DNA of 55,283 bases, the filler included, from Platydemus manokwari (lineage: Eukaryota), in the NCBI GenBank assembly GCA_037951405.1. It is 5 parts of 5 records of this genome, joined end to end, with 100 filler letters (N's around TTAATTAATTAA, not from the genome) between each part and the next. Parts side by side here need not be neighbours in the genome. Positions count along the whole stretch, not along the records: positions 1 to 11,500 come from JBBMOY010642209.1; 4 more parts are not named here. One strand, 5' to 3'. The position numbers and the translations under genes were made by a program. The notes under the pieces were generated by a model, which ran no database searches, had not been told where the DNA came from, and was given only the letters and a program-made list of their open reading frames with translations. Positions 1 through 11,500 of this stretch are shown here, piece after piece (position 1 is the stretch's first letter; each line of letters opens with the position of its first letter).

Positions 1-2571
1 ATAAAAATATGAATTTATTTATTATATATATTTACATTGATATCCAGCACATTTACATACATACATACATATATACTTCTATCAGATTGTACAACCATTT
101 CACATTTAAATTTATTTAAGTTAAAGAAGCAGTGTCAATATCTTAATTTATTTATGTTACTGATTTCAATTTCTTTGCTTTAATTCTTCTGACAGAAATT
201 GGAATGCAAAATTCGAAACTTAATATATACTTAAATCGATCTGAGTGAGCAAGTAAAACTGTGAGTAGCTATGTAAACTTTGAGTTCATTAAACTCGGAT
301 ACAAACACATGTGAAATGTGTAGAAAATGTATGATTTGTTTCATATTTAAAACTCCTACAGAGGATTTTCAATAATTATCGGAAAAAATTATTAACATTT
401 ATTATTTGATGAGGATAATTCTATATAAGAACCAACGAGAAGTTAAATTCTAATCTTAATTGGAATTGATTGTTAATATCGAATTCGAATGATTTATTAT
501 TTGAAATATAAGTTAACTAGACCTCAACATTTGAATTAGATTTGTATCTTATAATATGAATTTATTGTTACATTATGTTTGTTATTATAACTTATCAATA
601 CAAAATAAAACTATTTCAGAAATTTATCAATATAGAAGACAATTGAAGTTGATAATTGCAAATGACATCAGATAAATAGGTATCAAATTCAAATTCTTCC
701 AATAAAGTTAAATGCCCGATGGTATCATATATAGCTTATATTCTGGAAAGTTTTGATGTGTTTGGTTTAACATTTCAGAGCAATTTAATCAAAAGAAGAC
801 AATGTTCCATGTTTCCAAAAGTAAATTATTATGAAGTGAACATCAAGTCTTGTTATTCAGATAATGAAGATGTGCTGAAAATATTTTTCATGATCGTGAT
901 CTATAATCTCAATAAAATGAACAAATTACGTCGAAAGAATGTGTTAACGAACAAAGAAAATTGAATTCATCATTCAACAATGTCATTATATATATATATA
1001 TATTTCGTTTGGGATTTTAGGCTAGTACCAGTGGAATTCTATATTTTTACTAAGACGAAGTTTAGTAATAAGTATAACTTTATTTTATTCAGTGATATCA
1101 ATTAAAACGTAATTGTAACAAACTTGTTCAGTAAATTTTGCTAATTATAATTACCCTGTGTGATGGCACAACTTCTGGTTTGCAAACAAAACTAAATGAT
1201 TACAATTGCTGACTTCCAAACAATAACTATATAATGAGAACAATGATAATATTGCGGTATCAACGTGTGATTTGTCGTTACAATTATTTCGAGTAGTTTC
1301 AACGAAAAAGTACAACAAAAAATTCGATTTACCAGTGTGCAAGATAGAAGAATCGATTATATTGGTGTTTGAAGATACAAGATATTTACATAATACGGAA
1401 ATATTTTGACTTCAGGAACAAATGATAATTTACTGAATAATTCGAACCGAATTTATATTTCTATAAATGCCACCAATTAAAACCTTTAACAGTCAACGAA
1501 CGCCGATCACATTCCTTTTCAATTTCGATATTCAATGTCACTTATAAAGGCTACAATATCATGTACTGAGAATTAATTATTTACAAATTTAGAACTTGGT
1601 TTGTTATCGAATGATTTTCTAGTCTAGTTATCAATAATCAAATATATAGGCTGCGTCTTAGTCAGCAACGTAACTCTGTTTATCCGATTACTATTTTTAG
1701 TCAACTTTTATTTTCGATTCGAGATTATTTTATTATATTTGATTTATTATTTATTAACCGCTTCATTGTCGTTAACTTATATTCGTCTTTTTATATTTAT
1801 CTTATTATAATTATTCGAATTTATTATTGTATTGAATGGACGATTCTAACAAGTTTATTCAAAATAAAATATAATTTTAGACTACATATTCATATCGGAC
1901 TGGGATAAAATAAAATTATAACATGAATGAAACATGGAATAGAATATAACAATAGTGAAAGAAAACAAAAACATGAAAGTTTATTACTAAGAATAATGAA
2001 CATTAATATTATCATACAAAACCTAGAGTGGCAAATGATATTATCAAATGGTATATATTTATTAAAAGATATCACGTGTTTTGAAAGTCCACAGATGATA
2101 TGTGTTGTATTATTGATTCAGATAAACAAATGGGATATTATTTAGATGAATAACAAATGAGACTCATTGGCCTTGAATCTTGGTTTTATAGGACGTTATT
2201 GTATTGATTAATTAAACCAATATTTATAGAATAAATTGGCATACTGTATTTCTTCTGGAATTTTTTGAAATCTTCTGACAGACATAAGATTCTGGCTGGT
2301 TCCACTGAAAACAATGTTTGAAAAATTGAAATACTCATTAATGAATATGTTCATGAAAAAATTATTCAATACTCATTTTAAATTTCGTTTTTAAACAGAT
2401 AAGAATAATTTAATTCTGCTTGGCGTTGTCGACCTTTTCGTATAGTTTGAGATTTGCACCAATTTAATCATACTTTCTCTTGTCTTATCTCTTTCTTCTT
2501 TTTATATTCAGGTAGGGCATCTTTACAGTGAACTTAATTTTTATATACTTATTTGCCTTTTTTAGTTCGAG

Positions 2572-2670
2572 ATAATAATAATAATAATAATACAAATGAT
2601 AATAATAATGTTATAAGAATGTAATAATAATATAATATAATAATGATAATAATATAATATAATAATATTG
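2572..2670. repeat. (AAT)n / (AATAT)n low-complexity microsatellite
   Basis: Direct reading: ataataataataat...aatataatataataat. Confidence 0.8.
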
Positions 2671-3504
2671 ACAATACCCTTCATCAAAAAGATTTATAAA
2701 CACTTAATCTCAAAAATGTTAAGTCATTGTCTAAACAAACATTCTGAATTTTTGTTTATTTAAACGTGCAATCAAACAGTCTGAAGAATTCAGACTCTAA
2801 ATTGATGAATTTCTCTCTAAGATTAATCAATAAAATCGCATAGATTGTCTTAAATATTGTTAATTATGTTAATAAATAATTTACAGTTTCAAAATGAATT
2901 TGATAATCTATTCAATGTGACTTTTATTGCTAAATCTAAAGTCAGACACTGAATAACTATCTATGACAACAATCTATCTGCAATTGTTTTATTTGATCAA
3001 TGTTTGAAGGCTGTATTGATCTGAAAATCACGGTGACATTAGTAATGATAAATCTCAAATAAATAATACATCTGCTTATGCAGAGCATGTATCACACACA
3101 CTGTCGCATACGAACGGTCGCATTTCAATGCGCTAGTTTTTGGAATTAATGAACAATGACAAAAAGCGATCGATAAATGTGTTTGTGTGTGCGATGTACG
3201 ACAATAGCAAGAACTCATTGAGTAGGTTCAGATGAGTAAGTTGCTAGATTGATACACAAATATAATGAAATTTACTTTGCACACCGGATCTCATAAAAGT
3301 CAATTCCATTGTGCATTTGTGCATTCTTTCAAAATCTGTTTCATTAATCTATTTTCAAAACTTTTCGCTTTTGATTTAATAAGAAAAATAAGAATTTTCT
3401 AAGGTTAGTTATTGATTGTTTTGACTAAATATCGATTAAAATACGTAAAACCCACCGTTGAACATTTATCCTTTTTTCTTTTGAATCTAGTTTGATTTTC
3501 GAAT

Positions 3505-6500
3505 ATGGCTCTCGAAGATCCAGATCAAACGAGATTGAAATACATTCAAGTATGAAAGATAGATTTTGTAATGGGATTGATAAAATTAATGGTTTTATTT
3601 TCATCTTAGTCTTCGATACAAACGGTATCGTTTTCCTGCTCCCATACAGCGCTATTATTGGAAAATGATCATCAAGCTGCACTGAAGGCCGAGATAGAAG
3701 ATATCGAAAATCTAATAAAATCATATGTAAATGGATTATGAAATATATTCACATATAACGTATATATTTTTTTGTTAAAGGATAATTCGGAATCACAGAA
3801 AGATCTAAGTGATATTGAATCAATAAAAGTAATATATAAACTTGGTTTATTTTCTGTAAATTAGCTACTTTCAATTTTCAGGAGAAAATATCATATAATC
3901 AAGAAGATCTTGAATTTTTCGATTCAATTTCGTCATTGGAAGAATTATTTTCGGTAAATTCTTTGCGTTCTTTCATGGTTTCAATGGTTTATTCAATAAT
4001 ATTTTTGTTTCGTTCAGCAACTAACAACTCAAATAGCTGATAGGGCTTTAAAAGATTCCATGGTTTCTACGACGACAAATTTCGAGTCTGATGTAATTTT
4101 ATTATATAATATAATATAATCGAATTTTTAAACAATCTTATTATTCAGCGCGCACCATTACCCAAAGTGAAACAATGTTGGAATCAAATTGTCCTTTATT
4201 CCGAATTAGCTTCTATCCATACAAAAGATGCAGCCGATTATCATAAGGTGATTGCATTTATTGATTTTTAGCATTGTTTCAGAAACTTTTAATATTTTAA
4301 ATCAACCTACAGGATAAAAATAAAAAGTAATAATTTTAATTTATTTCAGTTCTACCACGAATGTTCCGAAATCAGGCGTCTTATCGAAAGAAGATGGCAA
4401 TTCACTTCAAAGTCATTAAATAACCTACACATCAAAGGAATAATGAAAGATGCGAAAGAAATAATAAAGATAACCAAGGTAAATTATTAATCAGTTTTTT
4501 TAAAGTGAGTACTTTAATAAAAGGAATCAACAATTGATTTACAAAATCTGGCTGACCAAATCAATAATCTCAAACGTAGATGTTCGTCAATTGTTCCAAT
4601 TTATCTTCGAACGAATCCCATTGCCGATCAAGGAAAGAAAGCCTTATTATTAGCTGATATAAAGATCGGTGATTTACAACTGAAAAAAGGAGACCATGTA
4701 ACAATATTGGATAATTGGGGCAAAGATGGAGCAACAAATAGAATTTCAAATGCTTCCGATATAACAACAAATCGAATTAATTGGTTAGTAGAAACGAAAT
4801 CTGGAGATAAAGTACTCCTTCCATCTGTGACGCTCTGGATTCCAGGTCCTGATTCTGAGACGGCTTTGGTTTTAAATGAGTTAGTTTGCGTCTGGTTTTG
4901 ATTATTAATGTTACCATTATTTATTTAATTACGGTTTTCTTTTACTAAGCTGAATCCATAGTAACACAAACAGGATTTTTCAACTACTGAAAAATATAGC
5001 GATATTAAATAATTATCAATATGTTAAATGCGTAGGAGCAATTTTTATTTGCAACACAAGTAACAAAGTAAATCAATGATTGAAACTTTCTAGTTCTAAA
5101 TTCTGAAATTTCATTTCAAATAATTTATTCACATTTAAACAAACAAATCTTTAAAATTTTGATAAAAAAATTTCGTTTGATTGCAAATATGTACATCATA
5201 TAACGATTTATACATTATCAATCCAAAAGGTTACACTNNNNNNNNNNCTGCACAAGGAATAGAGAATGTACATATTCATCAAGAAAGAATACGATTCTAT
5301 ACTTAGATGAATATGAATAAATTCGTGATTAATATTTAACCAACAATTTCAAATTATCACGCACTGATTGGCTAAAGTTTAGAGGTTTTTAAATTTGTTG
5401 AATGTATTGCAAAAACCTATATAGTTTACTTAATTATAAAAACATTTTTGAATTTTTTATTTAAGTATTTAATAAGAATTTTAGTTATTTGAAATAATAA
5501 ATTAAATAGATTAGAGCTTCAAAATTTGATTATTCGAAAAATGGATCAAATTAAGTTGAATAGCAATTTATTGAAAATTAACGAGGACCCATTTTTTTAA
5601 TATTGGAAACAAATTGACAAATATTCTCAATTTTTAAAATTAATTTATAAAAATAAGCAAGAATATTACAAAGCACGTCTGTAGTTAACTAACTCGATTT
5701 ATAATTAAAAAATTAAATTTAAAAACTCAAATAATCGTATAGAAGTGTTTTGATTAGAATAGGAACTTGGTTTGAAAATTATGTTTTGTTCCTATTTGAT
5801 CTCATAAAAAGTGAGATATTAAATAAGCCATTAAATTAAATTATAAAATAATTTCATGCACGAAAATTCGTAACGAAAGTATGTCAAAGGACCCTTTTTC
5901 TTAACTTAATCCTACTGATGTTTAGAGGCATAACAAATTTTTAAAATACTTCATTTCAAATATGGGGAATATTCAAGCCATTCTCACAGCTTTTTTTTTA
6001 CTGTACTTTGTTATTTTTCTAGATTACACAATCAACTCAGTACTGCATGGATGGAGTTGAACGAATTATTGAGAGAAACAATATTACAATACTATCAAAG
6101 CCTATTCAAACAGATCATATCGAAAAAACAATATTCATCTAATAACAAAGAATTATTATTGAAATTGACAGAAAGTGTTTCGCAATTGATATCGATGGGA
6201 GGATCCGAATCTATTAACGTTGAGGAGTTCCAACGTGATATGAAAACTATCGAGAAAATGGAAATTCGAAAAGATGGTATACATTAATATTTATAATCAG
6301 TTTATAATTCTAAATTCACGTAATACATTTTTGTAGTTTTGAATAAATTATTGAACAAATAGCCGAAAAACAATCACATTGGCACTACGAGCCAGAACAT
6401 TTTTGCTGGAATAATAATTGTTAAAATAATATGATTATTTTCGTTCTAAATCCATTGTAATAAAAGTGTTCAATTTGATCACAGTTCAAGGTTGAAAGAA

Positions 6501-9500
6501 ACCTAATTGTTGAAGTCATTTCATTGAGGAATGTTTTTCATTGTTAGAAATATAAAAATCGTCTCGATTCTCGAAATACTGATGGTATTCGGTATTCATA
6601 TATAATTGGCTCCCGGAGTATGTGCGAAAGTTAATGTGTTAATGAATTTTAATTTATGGTAATAAATAAATTAAAATTCATTAACATATTAACGGTGTTT
6701 TATTTGTTAAATTTCTCGAGAGATAGTTAAATCGTATTTATTATATGGAAATATGCACGGTTTTTGGATAAATATCGATAAAAATCCAACTAACAAATTC
6801 AGTATGAACAATTGAATTGAACGACATTTTGTAAATAAATAACTTGTAATACGGAATCATTTAATTTATATAAACACCATAAAAATTAAAAAAAAATTAT
6901 TTTCATTTAGCACCAGCACTATCCGAAGGTTTTTATTTGAGGAGACAAGATCTGGTAATATTAAATGAAATCATGACAAAATTTTCAGTAATTTGATTAT
7001 TTTTTAAAACCAAATATATAACTTTAAACCGCTTGTAACAGGTAATGATTCAACATCGTAAATATCTTACAACGACAACCTTAACTGTTTTGGATGAAGA
7101 ATGGAAATCGTCGATAGAAACCAATTTAAGAGTGGTGAATGCTTTGGGGAATTTACAGTAAAATTAAAATGAAACGATTTGATATTTTAATATTTATTTT
7201 CAGAGAAATGCAGCACAGAAACAAAAATGAATTGAAACTCATATTGCAACAAATCGAGATGTGGAAACAAGGTACTTTAAGTGCTTCAATTCTAAAGGAA
7301 TATACCAGATCACATTCTCCTGAATCAATGAGTTCAAGTGATGGTGATAGTGAATATCAGCCTTCAAGTCTGCCACGTGAAAGTCGATTACCGGTACAAC
7401 AAAATCAACTCACTGAAATCAATGTTTATTGCAATAACGAATTGAGTGCAAAATCTTCATTTGATAGAATGTTTAACGAAATGTTCGTGTCTAGTGCGAA
7501 TATAGATAAAGATATGGAGCTAGAATCGCAAATTGTGAGTTATGATTCAGGCCAATTATTTAAGTCGAGAAAGAAGTTACAATTGAAACCATATTGGGAT
7601 GGAAACAATTTGAAAATAACATACTTCGAGGTAGCTCCAGTTGTAGATGGATATTCCTCTTCGGATGAAGAAATATTGGAAAAGACAGAAATAATTTCAA
7701 CTCAACAGGCAATAGACTCAGGTGTTGAAAAAATTGACAGCCAAGTTCAGATAGATATAAAATATGAACAGGATGAGGAAGAAAAATATCTTACGGGAGA
7801 TAAATTAAGAGAAGTTCAGGATATCGAAAATTTTATAGAAAGAAATATTTCGTTGGGGAATTTACAAATACTAATGAAAAAAATAAATTCCCATTTATCG
7901 AAATCAACAACATCTACTCCATGTCAAACTGATAGAATTAAAAAGATTGAAACGACTTCAATTAGAGATATTATTACTGAAACCATCAAAAGAGATGAAC
8001 TGGCAATTCTGATGAAAGAAATAAATTCTCGATTATCCAAATCCACTACTTCAAGTCAAACTGATAGAATTAAAAAGATTGAAACCGTCTCGATTAAGGA
8101 TCTAATTTCAGAAACAATCGATAGAGATGAACTAGCAATTCTGATGAAAGAAATAAATTCTCGATTATCAAGATGTACTACTTCAAGCCAGACTGATAGA
8201 ATTACAAAGATTGAAACGACTTCAATTAAGGATTTAATTTCGGAAACACTCAATAGTGATGAACTGGCAATTCTGATGAAAGAAATAAATTCTCGATTAT
8301 CCAAATCTAGCACTTCATGCCAAACTGACCGAATTAAAAGAATAGAAACCACATCAATCAAGGACTTTGTATTGGAAACAATCGATAGAGATGAACTGGC
8401 AGTATTAATGAAAGAAATAAATTCTCGATTATCCAAATCCACTACTTCATGCCAAACTGATAGAATTAAAAAGATTGAAACCGTCTCAATTAAGGATCTA
8501 ATTTCAGAAACAATTGATAGAGATGAACTAGCAATATTAATGAAAGAAATAAATTATCGATTATCCAAAACAACTACTTCATGCCAGACTGATAGAATTA
8601 AAAAGATTGAAACATCTTCCATAAGAGACCTCATTGCAGAAATCACTGAAAGAGATGAACTTCCAATATTAATGAAAGAAATTAATTCTCGATTATCAAA
8701 ATCAACAACTTCAACTCAAGTCGATGAATTAATCGTAAGTTCAAAATCCAGTTTAAGTAGAAGTGAAAAACCAAAAATTTATGAAGACGCTTGTTTTGAA
8801 TTTTCACCCATTAAAGCCGCAATGAAAGAATTTGGAACTGCAAGTACTGATAAAATAAAGCACAAGTATTTCCAAAAATCAACTGAATGTAAAACACAAG
8901 ATGAATTTATCAGAGATCTCGAAATAAAGAGTATTTATCAAGAAGATAGAATAAATTATAATTCAAAATTATTGACTTTTGCTGGCCCAAAATTCGTAGA
9001 CAAATATTCTGAATATAAGACTAGATTGATTGATTGTTACAATGAATACACGATTAGAAGTGAAGATTATATGGTTGACGAATCGATAACATTATACGAA
9101 TCAAGTATGGATGTTTCAGGAATTGAAACGAAAGAAATATCATCAAGTTATGAAATAAGTTATTGCTCCACTGAATGTGAAATTACCGATAACGTTGAAG
9201 AAATTATACAAAAATCTCAAGAAAAAGAAGAAAGTTCAATTGTAATGATGGAAGATGAAAGGGTATTCAATGAATTATCAATGAATGATATCAGTACAAC
9301 AATGGAAGTGAAAATGATTGATACTTATGATTCAATGTCAATCGAATATATGGAATATAACGATGATCACAGTAAACGAGAAATACACGAAGATAAATCA
9401 TTTGAGACAGAACCGAGAAAATTGAAAATGATGGTTGTAACATCGGAGATAATAAAATGTAGTGTGGACATTCAATTTGATGGACTGAAGAAAGATACAT

Positions 9501-11500
9501 TCGAGACAGGATGGGAAACAGAAATGGAAACAAGAGAAACCGAAAATCAATATGAAGTACTTTTATTTATATTTAAAATACATTACATATATGAATTGAT
9601 TTCTTATTATAACCGTTATTTCTAGCATGAAATCTGTATAACCGTATGACTTTGATTATGGAGTACTATATACTACATACTATTATGTTCACTTTTTAAA
9701 ACTTATGTCCTCGCTGATAAAAATGGTATAATGTACATTTTTAGTATCTTCTACATCAATGGATATGAAATATATGGAATCTCATTGATTATATATTACT
9801 TATTGTCTGTGAACTTGCTTATACAATAATCTTTTGTGAAAAAGATTGGTTATATAATCCAGTAATTTACAATCATAAAATATTTCTCAATACCTATCTT
9901 CAGAAATTTTTTTCCCATTAAGATAAAAAGTTAACTGGCACGATTTCGATCGATAACGTAATGTCAACCATTATTACCCATCGTTTATTTATTTTTAAAA
10001 TTATTTTTATCAGTTCCTAATGTTAATGGCAATTTAAAAATTCAAAGTTGTTTATCAAAACATTTTCTATTTTAAAAATGATGTTTAAAGGAAAACAGAC
10101 ATGGATTTAATAAAGAAATGTTTGTCAAATAATGGATTGATGTATATCCCATAAATATGTCTTTCTTACACGTTAACGGGTGCATTAATATTGACTTTAT
10201 AATAAATAATATGAAGCCATATCTAACGAAAATATATATGAATGGAAAATGTAATATCATAAAATTCTGAAATTATATTTATATTATTAAAAATGTCCTA
10301 TAGTACGAGTTGTAAATACGTGATATTTTTGAAGATTTGTAAATGTCAAATATAAAATCACAAGTAAAATGAAATCAAAGGATCTACATTAAGGTTTGGG
10401 TTTATTAATACCATACAAGTCAGTTCTAATGTTTAATATATTTAAATAATTTTATTGGTTGATTTTGATGTTCTTATATAAGTCTTTTAAAAAATAATCA
10501 CAAGAAATATTATTTATTAAACAATTGTAATCCTATAAAACGAGCACTACCAATTAAAAATAAATATATAAATAATAATATAATATTCTTATATCAAATT
10601 TATTTTATAACTAAAGATAAATTCTGTCGATAATTCTTTTGATTTAAATGAAGTTATTGCATAATATTATTAAAATTTATTTCATTTGAAGGTGATATCA
10701 GAAGATATAATGACAGAAACTGATGCCATCATTCTAGCAGATACAGTTCATGAAACGAATATTAAATTCTCCGATATTTGTAGTGAATTCAAATTAGAAA
10801 TTGTCGATGTAAACAATTTACATTCAATCGAAAGTTCACAAATCTCAATAATCCATGATGAGAAAGAAGATGAAACTGATGCGACTCAATCAATTGAAAA
10901 GATTACAATAGATGTAAGTACAGATGTTTTTGGATTGAGAGAAATGAATTGTAAAGAAACAATGACATCGATTGATTTGAGTAAAACGTTAAGAAACGAA
11001 GGTGGAGAATTCGTTTGTGAAGTCATCAATATTGATACTCAAGTGGAAATAAATTTCGAAGAGAAATCATTGGTTCATGATGTTGTGAAATTCCATGAGA
11101 AATATTCTGAATACAATAGTAAATTGATAGATTGTTCAAATGAATACACGATTAGAAATGAAGAATTTTTGATGGATAAATCGATGAGATTGTGTGACTC
11201 AGGTATGGAGGTATCAGGAATCGAAATAAAAGATGTATCAACGAGTTACGAAATAATTTATTGTACAACTGAATGTGACATTGGAGAAATGGTAGAAGAG
11301 ATGAAACTAGAAGTAAGTGAAAAAGAGGAACGATCGGTTGTGATGATGGAAGATGAAAAGGTGTTCAATGAATTATCAATGAATGATATCAGTACAACAA
11401 TGGAAGCGGAAATGATTGATATATATGATTCAATGTCAATCGAATATATGGAATATAACGATGATCACAGTAAACGAGAAATACACGAAGATAAATCATT
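3505..11500 (+). CDS. Multi-exon gene: truncated plakin-domain (spectrin repeat + SH3) protein with long acidic, repeat-rich tail; 3' end lost in assembly gap
   Basis: Hand-spliced GT-AG exons keep one open frame: 3505-3549, 3610-3726, 3781-3828, 3882-3953, 4018-4092, 4149-4247, 4350-4478, 4524-4879, 6023-6276, 6911-6954, 7042-7157, 7204-9556, optional 9626-9643, 10692->11500. An in-frame TGA at 3493 precedes ATG 3505; probable 5'UTR intron 3404-3490. The peptides KQCWNQIVLYSELASIHTKDAADYHKFYHE and LKRRCSSIVPIYLRTNPI..KALLLADIKIGDLQLKKGDHVTILDN..WLVETKSGDKVLLPSVTLWIPGPD match the plakin spectrin-repeat/SH3 pattern of desmoplakin, plectin and dystonin (W..L....E.HL...A.Y.QF; IV.LKPR..ALCDYK...KGD...L.DN..W.V....G....PSV...IPPP). 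Confidence 0.85.
4524..4879 (+). CDS. Exon 8 of the plakin-like gene: plakin-type SH3 domain
   Basis: Open frame from AG acceptor at 4523 to GT donor at 4880; contains ALLLAD..KKGD.V..LDN..W.VE...G....PSV..WIPGP. Overlaps track ORF 4707-4901. Confidence 0.85.
5390..5911 (+). mobile_element. Dispersed non-coding repeat, copy A (probable non-autonomous DNA transposon), in intron 8
   Basis: Aligns by eye with the reverse complement of 19536-20102 and with 42952-43172; all three share the end GTCAAAGGACC(C)TTTT.TT.ACTT. Confidence 0.7.
6630..6693. repeat. Near-perfect 28-bp inverted repeat with 8-nt loop in intron 9
   Basis: Left arm GTTAATGTGTTAATGAATTTTAATTTAT (6630-6657); right arm ATAAATTAAAATTCATTAACATATTAAC (6666-6693); one G.T pair. 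Confidence 0.85.
7204..9556 (+). CDS. Giant exon 12 of the plakin-like gene (S/T/E/D-rich tail with 44-aa repeats)
   Basis: Lies inside the 828-aa track ORF. Acceptor tttattttcag (7203) and donor gtactt (9557) are phase-compatible with the flanking exons; the ORF's first ~22 and last ~22 residues are not part of this exon (other frame or intron). Confidence 0.85.
7838..8725 (+). repeat. Coding tandem repeat, 132-bp / 44-aa unit, about 6.7 copies
   Basis: Unit ETIDRDELAILMKEINSRLSKSTTSCQTDRIKKIETTSIKDLIS; the GATGAACT anchor recurs at 7994, 8126 and 8258 (period 132). Confidence 0.95.
10692..11500 (+). CDS. Exon 13 of the plakin-like gene, truncated by gap
   Basis: Acceptor ttcatttgaag at 10691, phase 0; ORF open to the N-run; its last ~137 aa duplicate a block of exon 12. 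Confidence 0.8.

Follow-up and report, generated by a model that had tools for sequence, protein, structure and literature searches.

The repeat exon and its seven motifs

The window analysed here is a 55,283-nucleotide stretch of DNA from Platydemus manokwari (GenBank assembly GCA_037951405.1), joined from five records, and its first part, contig JBBMOY010642209.1 at positions 1–11,500, carries a large coding exon with a tandem array of seven 44-amino-acid units, in each of which lies one candidate binding site for the dynein light chain LC8 (DYNLL). The array is genuine: it is a protein repeat maintained by selection, and the gene to which it belongs is lineage-restricted. As judged from comparison with validated binding sites, it is also a plausible new multivalent LC8 client with one LC8-type strand motif per unit, a reading to which a probability of about 0.5 is given. 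The source contig is 11.5 kb long and ends at 11500, its G+C content is 24–33%, and the assembly comprises 911 Mb in about 2 million contigs.

In the list of open reading frames, a frame of 828 codons on the plus strand (7139–9625, with its stop at 9625) contains the array. The large coding exon was placed at 7204–9625 (+) from this list, from the sequence around 7200 and from the alignment of the only relative recovered, the protein P0001 described below, which starts at a Met. A good splice acceptor, ttattttcag, has its last base at 7203, and the conserved Met codon at 7208 follows four bases on. Upstream of the array, the region 7208–7700 (+) was recognized as conserved by BLASTP against P0001 and by its invariant columns; it contains the blocks EMWKQGTLSAS and LQLKPYWDGNNLKITYFEV.PVVDGYSSS and is without a Pfam family. 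Exons were searched singly.

The array itself extends over 7847–8770 (+), as delimited by Tandem Repeats Finder, the unit table, column conservation and the ratio of non-synonymous to synonymous divergence (dN/dS) of the units. Tandem Repeats Finder gave a period of 132 nt, 6.4 copies and 83% matches at 7867–8713, and the Gln codons of the seven Q-[TV]-D motifs begin at 7925, 8057, 8189, 8321, 8453, 8585 and 8717, a spacing of exactly 44 residues. Written from position −5 to +2 relative to this Gln (position 0), the motifs on the plus strand are TSTPCQTD (motif 1, 7910–7933, degenerate, with Pro at −2), STTSSQTD (motif 2, 8042–8065), CTTSSQTD (motif 3, 8174–8197), SSTSCQTD (motif 4, 8306–8329), STTSCQTD (motif 5, 8438–8461), TTTSCQTD (motif 6, 8570–8593) and STTSTQVD (motif 7, 8702–8725). 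An earlier note on this DNA had described an evenly spaced array with one Q-[TV]-D motif per 44-residue unit and had read the motif ends as PCQTD, SSQTD (twice), SCQTD (three times) and STQVD; the tandem repeat analysis and the Gln codon positions bear out the spacing, and all of the strings are correct on translation.

Each unit has three parts, namely an amphipathic helix of the form R-D/N-E-L/M-x-I-L-M/L-K-E-I-N-S-x-L, a Ser/Thr-rich motif segment of 9–10 residues ending in x-Q-T-D/E, and a second helix-prone stretch, R-I-K-K-I-E-T-x-S-I-K-D-F/L-I/V. The array is unique in the genome. A scan with the regular expression [TIVSCMN]Q[TV][DE] gave seven matches in the 828-residue frame, all of them in the array, and one more (INIDTQVE) in the downstream exon, where the chance expectation for the 828-residue frame, roughly estimated from residue frequencies, is about 0.15 matches. 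On the minus strand an antisense open frame of 128 amino acids is found at 8056–8442; it is itself repetitive and is no gene, arising merely as the reverse complement of the repeated coding sequence.

Selection on the units and conservation in the orthologue

Among the five complete inner units, mean dS is 0.75 and mean dN is 0.096, with a dN/dS of 0.14 (range 0.08–0.20). Over all seven units, five encode the central Gln by CAA and two by CAG. Silent divergence combined with so low a dN/dS identifies the units as old copies under purifying selection.

With the whole exon as query, a word search across 5.8 billion proteins returned a sole relative, P0001 (UniParc-style identifier UPI000605DADE), a protein of 836 amino acids with 50% identity, hereafter the orthologue. 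No further relative of the exon was obtained in a HMMER profile search of 1.84 billion representatives, the array alone as query had no match in the word search of 5.8 billion proteins, and two metagenome scans for relatives found nothing. The orthologue starts at the Met equivalent to 7208, has the conserved N-terminal region in common with the exon, and likewise contains exactly seven 44-residue units; its alignment stops directly behind the seventh motif, conservation being absent from the tail that follows.

Across the 14 units of the two proteins, seven from each, Gln at position 0 is invariant, +1 is Thr in 13 and Val in one, and +2 is Asp or Glu in all. Of all columns in the unit, −1 varies most (entropy 2.61), yet it is occupied only by Cys, Ser, Thr, Asn, Ile, Val or Met and never by a charged or aromatic residue, Gly or Pro; in the window it is Cys in four units, Ser in two and Thr in one, and in the orthologue the series is Ser, Asn, Ile, Val, Met, Ile, Thr. 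Loss of the QT pair in orthologues had been named beforehand by the earlier note as a finding that would speak against LC8 sites, and the conservation held: Gln at 0, Thr or Val at +1 and Asp or Glu at +2 recur in 14 of 14 units from two species. Periodicity within the array is no independent evidence, being a by-product of tandem duplication; that the motif array is more than chance follows from the purifying selection on the units and from the retention of Q-T-D/E in the seven units of the orthologue.

These results also bear on the possibility that the array is non-functional, whether as a non-coding satellite, a pseudogene or an assembly artefact. In favour of such an origin, RNA evidence was sought and not found, the sole sequencing run holding the locus being a genomic DNA run (X1), collinear with the introns; the assembly, with its approximately 2 million contigs, is highly fragmented, and the repeat also yields the long antisense open frame at 8056–8442. 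Such an origin is nevertheless extremely improbable, given that the frame is open over 828 codons, that dN/dS is 0.14 at a dS of 0.75, and that a 50%-identical orthologue carries the same seven units. Independent contigs of run X1, moreover, span most of the stretch, with their breaks falling within the tandem array.

Comparison with validated LC8 sites

The LC8 motif comprises eight residues, −5 to +2, with Gln at 0, mid-sized hydrogen-bonding or hydrophobic residues at −1 and +1, the latter being Thr or else Val, Cys or Ile, Asp, Glu or Pro at +2, no bulky aromatic residue at −2, a side chain at least the size of Val, often Lys or Arg, at −3, a polar, non-hydrophobic residue at −4 and no Pro inside the motif (Jespersen et al. 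2019, PMC6607443). The units were compared with the 79 validated binders and 32 tested non-binders of Table S4 of that paper, positions being tallied by hand. Among the 79 binders, Gln stands at 0 in 74 and Thr or Val at +1 in 75. At +2 the binders have Asp in 20, Glu in 17 and Pro in 12, and all 14 units have Asp or Glu; at −2 they have Ser (20), Gly (19), Glu (13), Gln (9) or Ala (7), and Ser or Gly is found in 11 of the 14 units; at −4 Asp (31), Ser (20) and Thr (8) predominate and none is hydrophobic, and all 14 units have Ser or Thr. The units thus agree with the rules at 0, +1, +2, −2 and −4, with the sole exception of unit 1, which has Pro at −2. At −3, where Lys (21), Thr (11) and Ile (10) are found in the binders, the units have Thr in ten, Lys in two and Gln in two; Lys and Arg are the preferred class at this position, and Thr, which is second commonest there in binders (11 of 79), shares a volume bin with Val.

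Position −1 is Thr in 62, Ile in seven, Val in six and Ser in four of the binders; the 14 units have Cys (4), Ser (3), Thr (2), Ile (2), Val, Met and Asn (1 each), so that eight of the 14 lie within the validated set. The orthologue has anchors of validated kinds (GIQT, GVQT, NIQT and KKTQT), and four of its motifs resemble sites of Table S4 (PMC6607443): SSTGIQTE resembles KDTGIQVD of nNOS; ATTGVQTE resembles ISTGVQVN of ATMIN and SDKGVQTP; STKNIQTD resembles KSIQIQTE and QERAIQTD; and FTKKTQTE resembles LDKKTQTP and FTRSTQTS. In the window, motif 7 (STTSTQVD) shares six of eight positions with the validated Drosophila Ana2 site STTGTQCD. Sites with a CQT anchor are among the predicted binders of the LC8Pred scan of the human proteome; one of them, RDRECQTE, belongs to DNAI1, an axonemal dynein intermediate chain.

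By inspection, the strict pattern [^P].[KR].TQT is matched by none of the seven motifs in the window and by one of the seven in the orthologue (FTKKTQT). This pattern, which is ELM-style, misses many validated sites, such as GIQVD.

The earlier note had also listed look-alike motifs elsewhere in the tail, of which one fits the rules. INIDTQVE, an isolated LC8-like motif in the downstream exon (11025–11048, +) returned by the regular expression scan, conforms to the rules with a TQV anchor, Glu at +2, Ile at −3 and Asn at −4. Of the others, KIDSQVQ has Lys at −4 and is not kept in the orthologue, DIMTETD has Glu at the Gln position, and KETMTS is similar only to the rare TMT anchor.

The composition of the motif segment raises the question of a different regulatory or docking site, such as one for phosphorylation by phosphatidylinositol 3-kinase-related kinases (PIKKs) at SQ/TQ or by CK2, for O-glycosylation, or for transglutaminase, with the Gln as donor as in the cornified-envelope plakins. 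Four to six Ser or Thr residues lie within the seven positions before the Gln in each motif, SSQTD fits the CK2 pattern S-x-x-D, and vertebrate plakins are transglutaminase substrates. It is Q-T-D/E that is invariant, however, and no particular Ser or Thr is; S-x-x-D/E is lost in the CQT, IQT, VQT and MQT units, and the known transglutaminase preference, Q-x-P, does not fit, so that a site of this kind is considered quite unlikely. A PIKK SQ/TQ cluster was rejected outright, as it needs Ser or Thr at −1, which is found in only five of the 14 units.

Predicted structure of the units

Helix propensity within the unit is lowest in the segment from −7 to +2. Two AlphaFold2 models were obtained. 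For three units, with a 10-row alignment of unit triplets, the mean predicted local distance difference test score (pLDDT) was 58.8 and the predicted template-modelling score (pTM) 0.20, and the model is nearly all helix; for the whole array, mean pLDDT was 38 and pTM 0.14, and helices are interrupted by coil at −5 to −1 in every unit. The second half of the unit has a hydrophobic spacing without a clean heptad, and AlphaFold2 breaks the helix there. Since the units stay unpacked in both models, with no compact domain formed, burial of the QT pair is not indicated. A compact fold hiding this pair, which the earlier note had held to be incompatible with LC8 binding, was not seen in either model, both models being of low confidence; models of such low confidence are too weak to count as positive evidence for disorder.

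Searches of Pfam, PDB, ESM Atlas and Rfam with the array returned no informative repeat family, and its only PDB profile match was a designed antiparallel coiled coil (E = 0.007). A Pfam match to the TRIM COS box (PF18568) was rejected as an artefact of repeat summation, the whole array giving 47 bits, two units 18 bits, and one unit and the array of the orthologue none; a Pfam PGAP1 match on the array was rejected on the same grounds.

The same data allow for a purely structural 44-residue helical repeat, folded as a coiled coil, hairpin or solenoid, in which Q-T-D/E would form a turn or helix N-cap and LC8 would have no part. The flanking helices are conserved as much as the motif, Thr and Asp/Glu ahead of a helix are classic N-cap residues, AlphaFold2 predicts mostly helix, the one PDB profile match is a coiled coil, and a period of 44 residues is within the range of ARM and HEAT repeats. 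The units are unpacked in both AlphaFold2 models, on the other hand (pTM 0.14–0.20, mean pLDDT 38–59), and no repeat family of Pfam, PDB or ESM Atlas was matched. Helix capping does not explain an invariant Gln preceded by a mid-sized, uncharged residue at −1, and the likeness of four motifs of the orthologue to validated LC8 sites over 5–8 positions would have to be coincidence. A repeat with a purely structural role is held to be somewhat unlikely.

LC8 in the genome and the proposed assembly

A canonical LC8 is encoded in this genome at L004:531–782; it matches Drosophila LC8 (PDB 1rhw) with an E-value of 2e-49, is nearly identical to it over 84 residues, and retains the groove strand at its C-terminus. 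Dynein_light (PF01221) has at least 49 matches in the genome, four of which (L004:531–782, L005, L006 and L007) are near-canonical LC8 copies, each complete within one open frame. An expansion of the dynein light chain family, which the earlier note had mentioned for flatworms, is thus borne out strongly in this genome, where it accompanies a canonical LC8.

Most probably the x-Q-T-D/E segment would serve as a TQT-type short linear motif, which may insert as a β-strand into one groove of the dimer of LC8/DYNLL or of one of the many LC8 paralogues in the genome. Because every LC8 dimer takes up a pair of strands, an even series of seven sites would hold two protein chains side by side, parallel and in register, and the 36-residue helical spacers, left free to pair between the clamps, could give an elongated, stiffened dimer. 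From the motifs and the spacing we infer LC8 binding, its stoichiometry, the pairing of the spacers and the rod geometry; standard rises per residue give an estimated size of about 8 nm per unit and about 55 nm in total for the rod.

Several observations weigh against LC8 binding by the array. Its anchors in the window are mostly CQT or SQT, with Cys at −1 in four of seven motifs and Ser in two of seven; no CQT anchor occurs among the 79 validated strong binders in Table S4 of PMC6607443, and SQT occurs in four of the 79 binders and in four of the 32 tested non-binders. Pro at −2 in motif 1 is unfavourable. The inner units of the window are homogenized (73–93% identical), and with one orthologue only, the 14 units are not independent observations. 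Leu at −16 and Ile at −12 are invariant once unit 1 is shifted for its insertion of two residues, and conservation outside the motif equals that within it, so that the motif does not stand out as a lone conserved stretch amid disorder. In the three-unit model, a low-confidence helix (pLDDT about 55) runs through the motif. The proposal of the earlier note that these are LC8 sites consequently keeps part of its ground: it gains from the conservation of QT in the orthologue, from anchors of validated type and from the presence of LC8, and it loses from the CQT and SQT anchors and the long, helix-prone spacers.

The plakin-type SH3 exon

An exon with a plakin-type SH3 domain (Pfam SH3_10; E = 2.7e-8, with 34.2 bits where the cut-off is 22.8) lies at 4521–4898 (+), on the same strand as the repeat exon and 2.3 kb upstream of it. 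Fragments 71–85% identical to the SH3_10 exon are found in three other assemblies, and its PDB profile matches to plectin (3PE0) and desmoplakin (3R6N) are weak. At least three further SH3_10 loci occur in the genome (L020, L021 and L022, on contigs C1949160, C1378091 and C1612743 of G000), which makes the SH3 exon of the window one of several plakin-domain paralogues; as the 44-residue array is unique in the genome, none stands near these three loci.

On the strength of this single upstream SH3_10 exon, the repeat exon may be part of one gene with it. Bearing on the same question, a splice acceptor precedes Met 7208, and the protein model of the orthologue begins at that Met. The exons adjoining the SH3_10 exon had no Spectrin match, and plectin repeats, spectrin repeats, CH and GAR domains and a heptad rod were not detected in the contig, which ends at 11500. 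The frames 7139–9622 and 10686–11498 gave no credible Pfam family, the only matches being the COS and PGAP1 artefacts, and no plakin resembles the repeat exon. LC8Pred does predict a site in human desmoplakin, SHRETQTE (Table S2, PMC6607443). Among the papers searched, one mentions plakins together with LC8, a review of herpes simplex virus 1 (HSV-1) transport.

If the two exons were joined, the array might be the rod of a lineage-specific plakin-family cytolinker, in which seven dimers of LC8, or of one of the many dynein light chain paralogues, would alternate with paired helical spacers. This combined proposal is considered unlikely. Within it, the rod of beads and helices, about 55 nm long, would take over from the coiled-coil rod with heptads that classical plakins have, and Cys or Ser at −1 could reflect co-evolution with the binding groove of the paralogue.

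Other features of the contig

An AT-rich interspersed repeat occupies 5342–5938, within the intron-like stretch that separates the SH3 exon from the one following it; it has no Rfam family match, and its summed contig depth in run X1 is about 1.3e5, compared with about 14 in the flanks. An ATA-type microsatellite of about 34 copies lies at 2572–2667.

The array is followed by an acidic tail (KYSEY...NEYTIR...MMEDE.VFNELSMNDISTTME...). The DNA at 8990–9402 is 83% identical to that at 11088–11500, the contig ending within the second copy; this identity marks the acidic tail as a second, far larger duplicated module that extends across two exons.

Comparison with known systems

If LC8 binds, the array would be a naturally periodic LC8 scaffold with a fixed 44-residue spacing and structured spacers, unlike the disordered short-linker ladders of ASCIZ, Nup159 and KANK1. 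It would be useful for testing how the length and structure of linkers set cooperativity and rod stiffness, would be the first candidate for a client that could account for the puzzlingly numerous dynein light chain genes of this genome, and might link LC8 to a plakin-type cytolinker. If LC8 does not bind, the array would be an orphan helical repeat in a poorly sampled animal lineage.

Known multivalent LC8 clients include ASCIZ/ATMIN with 7–11 sites, Nup159 with 5–6, KANK1 L2 with at least 15 weak sites, and Chlamydomonas RSP3 (PMC6607443; PMC5963919; bioRxiv 10.1101/2025.07.16.665182). The array resembles ASCIZ, Nup159, KANK1 and RSP3 in that a single chain bears a series of candidate TQT-type motifs, and has no sequence homology to any of them. 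The expected outcome would also be that of the ladders, a stack of LC8 dimers keeping a pair of chains in register, and weak or non-canonical anchors are tolerated there through cooperativity. In KANK1, a cooperative LC8 rod is formed from individually weak, non-canonical sites (bioRxiv 10.1101/2025.07.16.665182).

The spacers are where the likeness to ladders such as ASCIZ and Nup159, suggested by the earlier note, breaks down. Those of the array are 36 residues long, conserved and helix-prone, whereas ladder linkers are short, variable and unconserved and lie in long disordered regions, a difference that adds to the points against LC8 binding set out above. Linkers in ASCIZ are also short. 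In Nup159 they measure 4–5 residues and in KANK1 3–4 (bioRxiv 10.1101/2025.07.16.665182). The array further departs from the ladders in its strict period of 44 residues and in anchors that are mostly CQT or SQT.

LC8 sites beside coiled coils are known from myosin Va (DDKNTMTD), Swallow (SAKATQTD), Ana2 (STTGTQCD and ICAGTQTD) and the dynein intermediate chain. In Swallow, Ana2 and the dynein intermediate chain, LC8 is thought to stabilize the adjoining coiled coil. The same is thought of myosin Va (PMC6607443). The array shares with these four proteins an LC8-type motif flanked by helical segments; it differs from them, with their one or two sites, in presenting a periodic series of seven, and the coiled coil of its spacers is a conjecture from the helix-prone sequence. 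With the plakins plectin, desmoplakin and dystonin/MACF1, it would have in common the SH3_10 exon on the same strand, were the two exons of one gene, and it stands apart from them in that plectin and spectrin repeats, CH and GAR domains and a heptad rod were not detected in the contig.

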